64,000 bases of DNA from Setoptus koraiensis (Eukaryota; Animalia; Arthropoda). Location of the stretch: positions 15,190,001 to 15,254,000 of the forward strand of contig CM106586.1 in NCBI GenBank assembly GCA_048013815.1. Reading direction: 5' to 3'. This document shows positions 20,384 through 25,413 of this stretch, one piece after another; positions within the stretch are counted from its first letter, which is position 1, and the number at the start of each line of letters is the position of its first letter. The notes below the pieces were generated by a model that did no database searches, was not told the DNA's origin, and was given only the letters and a program-made list of their open reading frames with translations. Position numbers and translations under genes: made by a program.

Positions 20384-21649
20384 TTGATGCAAAAAATGGA
20401 AACAAGCATGTCGAAAGTAATGCACATAAATTTCTTTATCCTGGCTGCAATTGTAATTGCATTTTGTAAGATTATAGATGCAAGCAGAGCGCCAACACTG
20501 TTGGCCGATTGTATCAGCATGGTCAAGAGCATAGATGATCTGGCTTACTTTGATGGGCCGTTTTCGGATAAGTTTTTCTCTCTTAGTAACGCCATGGACC
20601 CTAGAGATCTATCAAAATGTCTTAATACTAACAGTAACCCGGTCTCAGATGTGACTGAAATGAAGAAAATTTTAACTATTGGCAAGGAACATGATGTTTG
20701 TAATTATGATTTTATCATGCTGAAGCTGGCTAAATATCATGATGACCACTTTACGGACAATGCAAAACACAATCTACTGAGTTTGTTTAGATACTATACG
20801 AGTAAGGTAATAATTGAATGTAAGCAAGTTCTAAGTGATAAAATTGTTCAAGTTAGGAGAGACCAACATTATCCGGAACACATAAACATAATCAAAGATT
20901 TGATCACTAAAACAAATCTGATTCATATTGGTGAATCAACCACCTCAAAGAAACCATCAACTGAATTACCTGGGTCCAAAGTCGAAGGCTTGATATTAGC
21001 CGATGAAATTTTGGGTCTTAAGGCACCTAAAAAAGTACCCACAGTAACAATTGCATACTCTGATCGAGTTTTGGAAAACTTAAAAAAAATCCGATATTCA
21101 TGTGATCATTTGTTTCTATACCAGCGAAATGTTATTTATTCGTTGGTCGAGCTGGCAAAACGAGGTTACGCGGTATCATCACCAACTCTGGATCGAGGCA
21201 ACAAGGAATATCTGGAGGATTGGTTAGCATTTGCTCAAATGTGTGAAATGGTGGAATTGATGCAAGTTCGAATTTTGTATGATTCGAATCTTGGGCAAAT
21301 CGAGGCCATTCGCATTAAAATGACAAATTACTATCCGATCGAGACGCCTGACGAATTAAATTCGCAACTACTGAATCCTGAAGAAACGAATGAAGAACCA
21401 TTTATTTTTGATAGATCAGTCGCCAGAAAAATAAACCAATTTAATGAAAGTTTCGAATTGGGACCTTGTCAGCCTCCGAAAGGTATAAAAAAATTCTTGG
21501 GTTCTAGTAAATGTCCGTTTGAACCTGTCATCAACAGAGCTAAGGCAATCAAGCTGGTGAGAAAGAAATTGTATAACAACAACTTTTTGTATGTTTTCGG
21601 CGATTATTTAAGCAATACAAATATACCGGTCAATTCTTTTGGGCAATAA
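20384..21649 (+). CDS. Uncharacterised secreted protein (421 aa, intronless)
   Basis: Long complex-sequence ORF with a hydrophobic N-terminus (HINFFILAAIVIAFCKIIDA) and scattered Cys; no family recognised. Confidence 0.75.
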   Translation: MMQKMETSMSKVMHINFFILAAIVIAFCKIIDASRAPTLLADCISMVKSIDDLAYFDGPFSDKFFSLSNAMDPRDLSKCLNTNSNPVSDVTEMKKILTIGKEHDVCNYDFIMLKLAKYHDDHFTDNAKHNLLSLFRYYTSKVIIECKQVLSDKIVQVRRDQHYPEHINIIKDLITKTNLIHIGESTTSKKPSTELPGSKVEGLILADEILGLKAPKKVPTVTIAYSDRVLENLKKIRYSCDHLFLYQRNVIYSLVELAKRGYAVSSPTLDRGNKEYLEDWLAFAQMCEMVELMQVRILYDSNLGQIEAIRIKMTNYYPIETPDELNSQLLNPEETNEEPFIFDRSVARKINQFNESFELGPCQPPKGIKKFLGSSKCPFEPVINRAKAIKLVRKKLYNNNFLYVFGDYLSNTNIPVNSFGQ

Positions 21650-22282: not shown

Positions 22283-22630
22283 TTAACGACGGCCTGAGGC
22301 AGCTCCTGATGCGGCTCCTCCTCCTCCACCTGAGGCGGCTCCGGCAGCTCCACCGGCAGCTCCACCGGCGGCGGCTCCAGCAGCGGCTCCTCCAGCTCCA
22401 CCAGCGGCGGCTCCGGCAGCTCCACCGGCAGCAGCACCAGCGGCTCCTCCACCGGCTGCGGATCCAGCGGCTCCACCAGCAGCAGCTCCAGCGGCTCCTC
22501 CTCCTCCGCCACCACCGGATGCAGCTCCACTAGCAGCTTGCATCTTGATTTGGCTCACTGAGGTCAATGCAATGATCATTACGACCATAAGCATTAATTG
22601 ACTGAATGTAAAGTTAGCGAATACCTTCAT
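22283..22630 (-). CDS. Secreted Gly/Ala/Ser-repeat protein A (115 aa), ends in GRR
   Basis: Signal-like MKVFANFTFSQLMLMVVMIIALTSVSQ, GGAAGAAA repeats; clear paralog at 24022-24543. Confidence 0.85.
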   Translation of the reverse strand: MKVFANFTFSQLMLMVVMIIALTSVSQIKMQAASGAASGGGGGGGAAGAAAGGAAGSAAGGGAAGAAAGGAAGAAAGGAGGAAAGAAAGGAAGGAAGAASGGGGGAASGAASGRR

Positions 22631-22932
22631 TTTGATTGTGGTTTGTGCGTTTTCTTTCTTTCAGATATGTTAACTCTTCAATTTTTCTTCACTAATGAAC
22701 TATGATCAGATGCAAGTGTCAGCTAGCAATGAGACTCGTAATAACTCGCTCCCAAATTTATAGTCTACAATGATTGATAATTTGTAGTTAGTGGATAAAT
22801 TTATTTGACTATCGCATATCGGGCCAACTAGCGCTGATCGCTGCATACTCTACATGTAGTAAACAAGCAACGCAGACTAGGTGTTTAATCTTCAAATTTT
22901 AATCAATCTCCTCCCTTAACCATCGCATTGAT

Positions 22933-22961
22933 GGCTAGATATTTCTGCTGACGTCAACTGA
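22933..22961 (-). promoter_or_regulatory. Conserved 29-bp block containing a perfect CRE (TGACGTCA, 22949-22956) upstream of Gly-rich gene A
   Basis: Identical to 25149-25177 (TCAGTTGACGTCAGCAGAAATATCTAGCC) within otherwise diverged duplicated upstream DNA. Confidence 0.55.
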
Positions 22962-23349
22962 GGAAACTATAGAAATTCAAAAAAGGCATTACATGATGTG
23001 CGTACGTTGTGTTCAATATAACGCTTTACGTTGATTAGTAAAAGTTAATGAAGATATAAACACAAACTGTTGCTGTTGAATTCACTTAAATTCGTTGTTG
23101 CAATGATTGTAAGATTTTAAATTGAATGTAAGGTGATACTCAAACATCTGAAAGCAAGTTTACTCAGTATTAGAAAAGATTTCACTTAGACTGGCTCGAG
23201 ATAGCGTTTGGAAGCTAGATTTTTTTTTCTATACGTTTCATCCAGAAATCCAAATAATCAAACTAACTCAATTAAGTAACTGCAATCATCATTTTGCGAT
23301 GATTTACATCGAGTTAGTTTGCTGACTACCATTCTAGACAAAATTCAAC

Positions 23350-23727
23350 CTAGATTAACATCTTGCCATTGAAAATTGAGCTACCGGGAGGGCTGAGGAC
23401 TATTTCCCGCAGCTGATCGCCTGGAACTCTGAAATTTTCATAGACTTTCGGTCGCTCAGCAGAGTTATCACCTGACAGTGAGACTCCCCGACGAACCGAA
23501 AAATTATATTCGATGGGATTTTTGATATTTTGGATTTTTGTGTGTTGGTCGGTTGGTTTTTCAGCCTTTTCAGCCTCGTCCGGCAACCTTAATGTTGGGC
23601 AATAACTCTGTCTAATCACAACTCGATATCGAAATTTCTCATTTTCTTGGTAATTGGCTGTCATAGTACTGCCATTGGAAGAGTAATAACGCAAAACAAA
23701 TATGAAAATGAAAATTTCCGCCAGCAT
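23350..23727 (-). CDS. Possible small protein with hydrophobic N-terminus (125 aa)
   Basis: ATG-initiated ORF MLAEIFIFIFVLRYY followed by non-repetitive sequence; no homology recognised. Confidence 0.3.
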   Translation of the reverse strand: MLAEIFIFIFVLRYYSSNGSTMTANYQENEKFRYRVVIRQSYCPTLRLPDEAEKAEKPTDQHTKIQNIKNPIEYNFSVRRGVSLSGDNSAERPKVYENFRVPGDQLREIVLSPPGSSIFNGKMLI

Positions 23728-24021
23728 TGCATTAAGTTAATTAAGGCGCATGGTCAGTATCAGCAGCTGCCTACCCGTAGAGTGTGATGTAATCAGTAGT
23801 AGTTAGCACAAATCACGCCTTTGTTACATAGTTAAATAAATTCACCAACAATCCGAAATTATCGGTTGATGCTTGCTGACTTGAGCGTGACTCACCGTAG
23901 ATCTCATAACTAGCTGATACTTGCATCTGATCACAGTTAAATTTCATTAGTAAAAAGAAAAAATAAAAGAGTGCGAATAATAGTTAGTTAAACAAAAGAA
24001 AACACACAAACCACAATCACA

Positions 24022-24543
24022 ATGAAGGTATTTGCCGATATTACACTCAGTCAATTGATGCTTTTGGTCATCATGATCATTTCATTGACCTCGGTGAGCC
24101 ACATCAAAATGCAAGCTGCTAGTGGAGCTGCTTCCGGTGGTGGCGGAGGAGGTGCCGCATCAGGCGCTGCTGCCGGCGGAGCTGGCGGATCTGCTGCTGG
24201 CGCCGCCTCGGGAGGATCGGGAGGGGCTGCGTCCGGAGCCGCTGCGGGTGGAGCCGGCGGATCTGCTGCTGGAGCCGCCTCGGGAGGATCGGGAGGGGCT
24301 GCGTCCGGAGCTGCCTCGGGTGGAGCTGGCGGATCCGCCGCTGGAGCCGCCTCGGGAGGATCGGGAGGAGCCGCATCTGGAGCCGCCTCGGGAGGATCGG
24401 GAGGAGCCGCATCTGGAGCCGCCTCGGGAGGATCGGGAGGAGCCGCATCTGGAGCCGCTTCGGGAGGAGATGGGGGATCTGCTGCTGGAGCTGCTGCAGC
24501 CGGTAGCCGAGGTGGTCTCACATACAGATTTGGTCGTCGTTAA
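24022..24543 (+). CDS. Secreted Gly/Ala/Ser-repeat protein B (173 aa), 12-aa repeats, ends in LTYRFGRR
   Basis: Signal-like MKVFADITLSQLMLLVIMIISLTSVSH; about 10 units of GGSGGAASGAAS/GGAGGSAAGAAS (36-nt period); the 5' flank is homologous to that of gene A. Confidence 0.88.
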   Translation: MKVFADITLSQLMLLVIMIISLTSVSHIKMQAASGAASGGGGGGAASGAAAGGAGGSAAGAASGGSGGAASGAAAGGAGGSAAGAASGGSGGAASGAASGGAGGSAAGAASGGSGGAASGAASGGSGGAASGAASGGSGGAASGAASGGDGGSAAGAAAAGSRGGLTYRFGRR

Positions 24544-24970
24544 GTTATTAAAATGAAAAACAAAACTTTATTGTAAGAAACTGGGCACAGTAAACTTGCT
24601 TATGTTTCACTGAAAAAATTCCTATTGTAAATTCTTTTATCTACTTGGCCGAAAACTTTTTTTGAATATTTTCAAGAATTTTATCTCTTTCTTTTCTGCG
24701 ATAGTTGTATATTAAAGAAAAAACAATTTAGTTTCCGAAGTTTTGTTAAACTTGCAACAAGAAATAATTTTGACGATTCAAAGACAGACAACAAACGAAT
24801 GTAAGGCTAAAAGTCTACAAGTAGCCCATAATTTCATCCATAACTTTTGAAAATTCTTATACATAATTTATGTAAAAAAAAAATGTTCACCAGATATTCT
24901 TCTTTAGAAATATCGAGACAGCCTAAGTAGAAACATTTCCGACACTGAATACACTTGTTTTCAAGGGTTC

Positions 24971-25413
24971 GAGTATCACCATTCACTCAATAATAATCAT
25001 TGCAGCCATGAATTCATTTGAATCAACAACAGCAACAGTTAGTGTCTATACCTTCATTAACCACTAATTTCACTAATCAACGTACAGCGTTATTTTGAAC
25101 ACAAAAACTTCATTACGTCACAACTTTTTTAAATTTTCAACGCTCTCGTCAGTTGACGTCAGCAGAAATATCTAGCCGTCAATGCTATGATTAAAGTGGA
25201 AATCGATCAAAATTGGTTACACATCTAGTGTGTGTTTCGTCTTTACTATTTGTAGAGTGAGCAGCAATCAGCGATAGCCATCCTGAAATATGCATTCTAT
25301 TGATGGCTTGATAAATCTGAATGAAAATCACAATCATCGGTCAATGTTTGTTGAGTTAGAGAGCTAATCATTATGAGTCTTATTTCTAGCCGATACTTGC
25401 ATCTGGCCACAGT
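24971..25413 (+). promoter_or_regulatory. Third, CDS-less copy of the Gly-rich gene upstream region
   Basis: Colinear similarity to the reverse complement of about 22699-23141 (GAGTATCACC...CAACAGCAACAGTT...CTAATCAACGTA...CRE block...TACTTGCATCTG); no matching CDS follows. Confidence 0.7.

Follow-up and report, generated by a model that had tools for sequence, protein, structure and literature searches.

The window analysed here, a stretch of 64,000 nucleotides (G000:C2:15190001-15254000), lies on one of the two contigs that make up the 48.76 Mb genome of the mite Setoptus koraiensis (family Phytoptidae), a species with two chromosomes (PMC11920263). The window is eukaryotic and intron-poor in character, and long single-exon open reading frames (ORFs) are numerous. 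Two of these ORFs, gene A and gene B, are transcribed divergently (head-to-head) from ATGs separated by 1,391 nt, and each encodes a small protein with a predicted signal peptide and a body dominated by Gly, Ala and Ser (Table 1). A third ORF, gene C, lies on the other chromosome and encodes a longer repetitive protein. Judged from their sequences, A, B and C apparently constitute a three-gene, lineage-restricted set of silk-like proteins.

Table 1. Features of genes A, B and C and of the A/B locus. Positions are those of the window, except for gene C; predicted mature chains are listed without their Gly-Arg-Arg end.
Feature	Position	Strand	Description	Basis
Gene A, coding sequence	22283-22630	minus	115 aa, single exon, stop included	ORF list, paralogous to B
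Gene A, C-terminal Gly-Arg-Arg	22286-22294	minus	amidation-type signal	read from sequence
Gene A, Gly/Ala(/Ser) repeat	22295-22513	minus	GGAAGAAA-like, loose 4/8-residue period	tandem repeat rows, Gly autocorrelation
Gene A, predicted signal peptide	22553-22630	minus	residues 1-26, hydrophobic core residues 12-22	Kyte-Doolittle 3.30
Gene A, proximal promoter and 5' untranslated region (5'UTR)	22631-22900	minus	common to B	alignments A1, A2
Gene A, conserved 24-mer	22703-22726	minus	E-box (CATCTG) plus TGATCA, some 80-100 nt ahead of ATG	
Gene A, perfect cAMP-response element (CRE) palindrome	22949-22956		TGACGTCA, distal promoter of A, kept in third promoter copy	read from sequence
Gene B, proximal promoter and 5'UTR	23760-24021	plus	common to A	alignments A1, A2; own-genome DNA search
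Gene B, conserved 24-mer	23910-23933	plus	E-box and TGATCA	genome-wide pattern search
Gene B, coding sequence	24022-24543	plus	173 aa, single exon, stop included	ORF list
Gene B, predicted signal peptide	24022-24099	plus	residues 1-26, hydrophobic core residues 12-22	Kyte-Doolittle 3.26
Gene B, repeat	24139-24501	plus	about 10 units of 12 residues (GGSGGAASGAAS, GGAGGSAAGAAS)	TRF periods 36 and 72
Gene B, C-terminal GGLTYRF, then Gly-Arg-Arg	24511-24540	plus		read from sequence
ATTAAA, poly(A) signal variant	24547-24552	plus	4 nt after B stop	read from sequence
Third A-type promoter copy	24910-25413	plus	gene-less	75-78% identical to A upstream region
Gene C	G000:C1:19415249-19417558 (L018:3750-6059)	minus	769-aa secreted protein (predicted), other chromosome	own-genome search with B repeat
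Mature A (predicted)			86 aa, 6.0 kDa, Gly+Ala+Ser 94%, basic 1, acidic 0, no Cys/Pro/Tyr	
Mature B (predicted)			144 aa, 10.6 kDa, Gly+Ala+Ser 92%, basic 3, acidic 1, Tyr 1, no Cys/Pro	

The N-terminal 39 residues of A and B are identical at 32 positions (82%; BLASTP E 7e-16). Their repeat bodies have diverged to about 70% and differ in period, and at the DNA level the similarity reaches ~270 bp into the upstream region of either gene (inverted repeat I1: 206 nt, 84%). The 39 shared codons hold six synonymous differences and seven conservative replacements, and the dominance of such changes points to a conserved coding frame rather than to a chance ORF in GC-rich repeat DNA. On this comparison, A and B are intact, real paralogous genes arranged as an inverted-duplicate pair. 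A preliminary description of the window had noted two paralogs with near-identical signal regions, divergent and about 1.4 kb apart, and the coding sequences, their identity and their spacing bear this out.

Gene C was returned when the genome was searched with the repeat of B. It encodes its own predicted signal peptide followed by 51 units of GG[S/H]GGSAAGAAS, and the mature protein would measure 52.9 kDa with no Cys. The repeat of B and the units of C are 83-86% identical over >100 residues, and both have a 12-residue Gly periodicity. Searches of the genome with the repeats of A, B and C, with the N-terminus of C and with the A/B signal region returned A, B and C only, a count that is a lower bound given the nature of such own-genome searches. 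The sizing of the family by its shared signal region, as suggested in the preliminary description, yields A and B alone, and it is the repeat that adds gene C. Two further loci from the own-genome search (L012, L013) were rejected, being other frames of unrelated repeats.

The repeat array of gene C provides the clearest sign of selection. Pairwise differences per site between its units amount to 0.032 at codon position 1, 0.029 at position 2 and 0.584 at position 3, with 3.2% amino-acid difference and with units far apart in the array being as similar as adjacent ones, and the codon identity at identical residues is 0.42 vs 0.36 expected from codon usage. A near-invariant peptide unit combined with essentially randomised synonymous sites indicates that selection has acted strongly and over a long time on the precise sequence of Gly, Ala and Ser, as would be expected of an ordered assembly and not of a generic flexible spacer. 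The array may be under selection against repetition at the DNA level as well. A frozen peptide with randomised codons is unusual, as tandem repeats usually homogenise at the DNA level. For B the evidence of selection on the repeat is weaker than for C, B tolerating interchange of Ala and Ser. Between B and C there is no similarity at synonymous sites (codon identity 0.275 vs 0.287 expected), so that the common motif is either ancient or convergent.

The predicted proteins are simple in composition. Over its full length, protein A consists of 36.5% Ala, 31.3% Gly and 7.8% Ser, and protein B of 32.9% Gly, 30.1% Ala and 16.8% Ser. The N-terminal hydrophobic cores (11-14 residues) are within the range of signal peptides; for both proteins we propose cleavage after Ser-Val-Ser (residue 26), a site placed by the -3/-1 rule, upon which mature A would begin with Gln. 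In the AlphaFold model of B, a helix at residues 2-29 (blockwise mean predicted local distance difference test, pLDDT, about 67-90) precedes a remainder with pLDDT <50, and in the model of the first 279 aa of gene C only an N-terminal helix is found, the remainder again having pLDDT <50. The mature parts of A and B are accordingly predicted to be disordered on their own.

The periodicity of Gly distinguishes the repeats from one another and from the classical silk designs. In B the Gly autocorrelation is 0.96 at lag 12, i.e., a strict 12-residue period, the unit being composed of five Gly-rich and seven Ala/Ser-rich residues; in A it is 0.34, 0.45 and 0.38 at lags 4, 8 and 12. Neither A nor B is periodic at lag 2 (about -0.3) or at lag 3 (about 0), and the Gly fraction by residue index modulo 3 is 0.49/0.50/0.28 for B and 0.25/0.50/0.49 for C. 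A polyAla, (GA)n/GAGAGS or GGX design is thus ruled out by the values at lags 2 and 3 together with Ala runs of 2-3 residues. The preliminary description had seen Gly-rich linkers alternating with short Ala runs and had taken this alternation for the hallmark of fibroins and spidroins. The linkers and the domination by Gly, Ala and Ser (92-94% of the mature chains) stand, with Ala runs of merely 2-3 residues, and the hallmark itself does not, the repeat being neither (GA)n nor polyAla/GGX nor Gly-X-X.

A and B share a further feature at their C-terminus, where both genes end in GG(C/T) CGT CGT TAA and hence encode a terminal Gly-Arg-Arg. This is the classical signal for trimming by a carboxypeptidase and Gly-dependent amidation. 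Four copper type II monooxygenase loci are present in the genome (C1, L021-L024), one of which encodes a protein of 329 aa, matched by both PHM domains but not by DOMON, that resembles rat PHM (E 2.7e-53) far more than dopamine beta-hydroxylase (1e-9). With this PHM orthologue, an amidating enzyme is available. If processed, B would end in ...GGLTYRF-amide, and A, starting with Gln, in ...AAS-amide. At least two of the copper monooxygenase ORFs are PHM-sized without a DOMON match, a larger number of amidating-enzyme-like genes than a genome so reduced would lead one to expect.

On the strand of gene C, no terminal exon encoding Gly-Arg-Arg was found near the gene. Its ORF ends in ...GGC AAA G/GT TTG TAA (L018:3745-3760, minus), where a plausible splice donor (AAAG/GTTTGT, the slash marking the junction) stands right before the stop, and two low-complexity ORFs follow on the same strand (715 aa at L018:746-2893; 627 aa at L019:7969-9852). 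A separate Gly/Ala-rich ORF of 169 aa (GAGAG, with Val, Lys and Glu) with a hydrophobic start is located ~4.6 Mb beyond the window on the same contig as A and B (L041:1978-2487, C2, minus); its signal region is unlike theirs, and it was not among the loci that the repeats recovered from the genome.

The upstream regions of A and B carry conserved elements as well. The 24-mer combining an E-box with TGATCA (Table 1) occurs genome-wide only at A, at B and in the third promoter copy, apart from one site with two mismatches (pattern search). In this third copy, TGACGTCA lies at 25154-25161 and the 24-mer follows at 25386-25409, and the ORF list of the window contains no signal-peptide ORF after the copy. 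It may be either what remains of a third family member that was lost or a promoter that has been re-used, and its gene-less state implies that the A/B locus has gained and lost copies. Upstream of gene C, CATCTGATCA is found at -118 (B: -98; A: -82), while AAACCACAA stands just ahead of ATGAAG in all three genes. When the C upstream region was shuffled (n=5000), 5.7% of the shuffles shared a 10-mer at a similar offset, and two separate 9-mers were found in 59/5000 (1.2%). The motifs are suggestive of a common regulation or a common origin of the three genes. In the place of the distal promoter of B, between A and B, lies an ORF of 104 aa (window 23353-23664, minus), and gene A is adjoined by an ORF of 421 aa (window 20384-21649, plus) with a signal-peptide-like start, which could be an orphan secreted protein; neither has a Pfam match.

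Homologues outside the genome were searched for at several levels. Pfam contains no family for A and B (E<=1) or for gene C (E<=0.1), and word-index protein searches (5.8 billion) with the signal region of B, the whole of gene C and its N-terminus gave nothing real. With B as query, a full HMMER search against 1.84 billion representatives yielded 63 matches at E<=1e-3. The 15 that were inspected were all compositional (Gly-zipper proteins of bacteria, repeats without relation to B), and in all 63 the alignment begins at query residue 10 or later. Nothing usable came from the ESM Atlas, a sequence search of the PDB gave only one compositional match (OCM3), and the JGI metagenomes contained neither an exact back-translated 12-mer nor a relative of the signal region. 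For the tetranychid fibroins of T. urticae and S. nanjingensis there was no significant non-compositional match, a result weakened by low-complexity filtering and an uncertain coverage of mites. The absence of homologues of A, B and C is weak evidence altogether, given the same two factors and given that the word-index search with the signal region of B did not return even its own query, so that the proteins of this genome may be missing from that database.

Several established classes can be set aside on sequence features. The conserved N- and C-terminal domains of spidroins are absent from A, B and C (Pfam scan), and the size of >200 kDa and the C-terminal Cys of the lepidopteran fibroin heavy chain are not matched by Cys-free chains of 6.0, 10.6 and 52.9 kDa. 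Gly does not occupy every third residue (lag 3 about 0) as in collembolan polyproline II (PPII) antifreeze or collagen-like proteins. Nor do A and B have the cationic character of Gly-rich antimicrobial peptides, with one basic residue in mature A and three basic residues, one acidic residue and one Tyr in mature B. Domain-defined cuticular proteins (R&R and others) are likewise rejected: homology to a characterised cuticular family, which the preliminary description had put forward as grounds for refutation, was looked for with Pfam, and neither a chitin-binding nor any other family domain was matched in A, B or C. With silks and other secreted materials, the three share a predicted signal peptide, long tandem repeats of small residues and, with the strongest evidence in C and weaker evidence in B, selection on the repeat.

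We therefore tentatively favour, at somewhat less than even probability, the view that A and B are partners of gene C and small secreted proteins of a silk-like or adhesive material. The suggestion of fibroin-like silk, glue or sheath proteins in the preliminary description survives in its secreted Gly/Ala/Ser design, which is reinforced by a repeat common to the constrained gene C, and loses its fibroin affinity, in view of the missing homology and hallmark pattern, the small size and the Gly-Arg-Arg end. In the mechanism that we propose, A, B and C would be kept in solution as a disordered dope. Once the material is secreted and dries, its Ala/Ser-rich segments of seven residues (SAAGAAS, AASGAAS) would come to pack together as short beta-strands, with Gly-rich turns of five residues (GGSGG, GGAGG) linking them in a strand(7)-turn(5) arrangement. 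Cohesion would then arise from the packing of small side chains in sheets, as in silk, since there is no Cys and there are almost no acidic, Tyr or Lys residues for cross-linking. The short chains of A and B could co-assemble with, cap or plasticise the 53-kDa chain of C, and their C-terminal amidation would remove the only negative charge.

The source tissue is most likely a secretory gland. The anal silk/attachment glands of eriophyoids are the prime candidate, with salivary, spermatophore-forming and egg-glue glands as alternatives. In Eriophyoidea, silk is produced by anal glands, which are thought to be ancestral and to be still functional in non-web-spinning species for attachment, ballooning and marking; the words 'fibroin' or 'silk genes' do not occur in that study (PMC13027148). 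A more specific version of our proposal is correspondingly less probable, and we regard it as rather unlikely in its entirety: A, B and C would be the protein basis of the eriophyoid anal-gland silk/attachment secretion, with C as the main chain and with A and B as short, uncharged and amidated chains capping or tuning its assembly, the whole representing an independently evolved 12-residue strand-turn design with C-terminal processing in the style of peptide hormones.

Several points weigh against a role as silk-like or adhesive material. The motif has neither the lag-2 pattern of (GA)n crystallites nor the lag-3 pattern of GGX or PPII designs, which leaves beta-sheet assembly a conjecture. 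With 86 and 144 residues, the mature chains are very short for proteins that form fibres, and a Gly-Arg-Arg end would be usual for peptides of regulated secretion but not for fibroins. The protein, Pfam, PDB and metagenome searches gave no homology to a fibroin, a spidroin or any other silk protein. The motif common to B and C could be convergent instead of inherited, and the match between the promoter motifs of C, A and B was noticed post hoc and is only modestly significant. Setoptus koraiensis is not known as a web spinner.

An alternative is that A and B are low-complexity fillers of cuticle, eggshell or another extracellular matrix, produced by the epidermis or the female tract and neither spun nor smeared. 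Arthropod cuticle and chorion often contain secreted low-complexity proteins rich in Gly and Ala, divergent gene pairs are classic for moth chorion loci, and the signal peptide and composition of A and B are compatible with such a function. We nevertheless consider it unlikely: besides the missing chitin-binding or cuticle domain in A, B and C, the two proteins contain almost none of the Tyr, His, Lys and Pro that are usual for sclerotisation or contact with chitin, and the Gly-Arg-Arg ending suggests regulated secretion from granules.

This same ending, with its codons conserved in A and B and a PHM orthologue in the genome, speaks for amidated bioactive peptide precursors, either of RFamide type (B, ...GGLTYRF-amide) or of Gly-rich antimicrobials in the style of acanthoscurrin and ctenidin. 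An Arg is present in B seven residues before the Gly, A would start with a Gln able to form pyroGlu, and amidated Gly-rich peptides of about 100-130 aa exist in spider haemocytes. However, the paralog A has no RFamide/YRF end and no internal basic site at all, while the only N-terminal cut site of B is a lone Arg without a basic residue at -4, -6 or -8. The protein and metagenome searches gave no conserved peptide homologue, and in the literature searched YRFamide is barely mentioned, with no arachnid case in the four listed of five papers that use the term. The mature chains, nearly uncharged and not amphipathic, are unlike antimicrobial peptides, and their repeat matches the structural-looking 53-kDa protein of gene C. 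A signalling or antimicrobial function is, in our estimation, quite unlikely.

Still less probable, we think, is a role of A and B as salivary effectors injected into or onto the plant, with the Gly-rich body imitating plant glycine-rich cell-wall proteins or building a feeding seal. The pattern of a conserved signal region and promoter (82-84%) vs diverged repeat bodies (about 70%) is that of a gland effector family, the third, gene-less promoter is in line with local birth and death of copies, and 'fibroin-like' proteins of spider mites have proved to be salivary and needed for feeding (PMC12534534). Yet the A/B family is tiny (two genes) and unexpanded, the repeat common to the highly constrained gene C argues for a role as material, and mimicry of the plant is pure conjecture. 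That A and B are non-functional, as chance open frames in GC-rich repeat DNA or decaying duplicates, is scarcely credible. Repeats of this kind are open in every frame, and neither an annotation nor a homologue came to light; yet the two copies have preserved their start codon, signal peptide and reading frame along with the stop context and 270 bp of promoter, the changes between them are mostly synonymous or conservative, and gene C encodes the same peptide motif with different codons.

If A and B do belong to a silk-like or adhesive material, they address a gap. Silk-like proteins have evolved many times in arthropods, and the webbing, attachment, spermatophore and feeding-seal materials of gall mites are without known genes. 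New in this study are the link of A and B to gene C, the analysis of the repeat design and the signs that its unit is under selection; with one 12-residue unit under strong constraint, the three genes offer concrete, testable candidates. The combination of a frozen protein and randomised codons in a repeat array also bears on the stability of repetitive genes in a tiny genome. Should A and B turn out to be amidated signalling peptides or effectors, they would represent a novel type of precursor, with a silk-like spacer as its basis.

Among known systems, the fibroin heavy chain of Bombyx (GAGAGS) and the spidroins (polyAla/GGX) share with A and B a near-pure Gly/Ala/Ser composition, short tandem units, a signal peptide and disorder of the isolated chain. 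They differ by their Gly alternation or GGX triplets and by conserved terminal domains, and A and B are 10-50 times smaller. A possible analogy for the strand(7)+turn(5) 12-mer is the cross-beta silk of lacewing egg stalks (MalXB1/2), which is rich in Ser, Gly and Ala, has a fixed short period of strand and turn and is drawn from a droplet on a surface. Its period is 16 and not 12 residues, and its proteins are large with Cys-containing ends; no homology is to be expected. Acanthoscurrin and the ctenidins are likewise chelicerate Gly-rich proteins, of about 100-130 aa, with a signal peptide and an amidation signal, but they are cationic and contain Leu, Lys and Tyr, whereas A and B are almost uncharged and gave no sequence match to them.

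Two systems are found within the mites and ticks. The salivary glycine-rich cement proteins of ticks are, like A and B, acarine, secreted and built from Gly-rich repeats, and they harden outside the body (PMC12534534); ticks are parasitiform and not related to the lineage of A and B, their cement proteins are Tyr/Leu-bearing GGY/GLG types, and no homology to them was found. The other system is the tetranychid fibroins. In Tetranychus urticae, 17 silk genes with a high content of Gly, Ala and Ser were predicted and the products of eight detected in silk, other 'fibroins' being salivary and needed for feeding (PMC12534534), and the fibroin of S. nanjingensis has 831 aa, >50% Gly/Ser/Ala and a signal peptide, mite fibroins lacking homology to each other (PMC9287230). 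Compared to A and B, which have just 115 and 173 aa and a Gly-Arg-Arg end, the tetranychid proteins contain more Ser (27-39%) and draw on all 20 residues, and tetranychid silk is released from the palps while eriophyoid silk, where present, comes from anal glands. As in A, B and C, however, they are secreted, repetitive, Gly/Ser/Ala-dominated proteins of an acariform mite, with gene C of similar size, and they are lineage-specific without homology across orders (PMC12534534, PMC9287230), as A, B and C apparently are.

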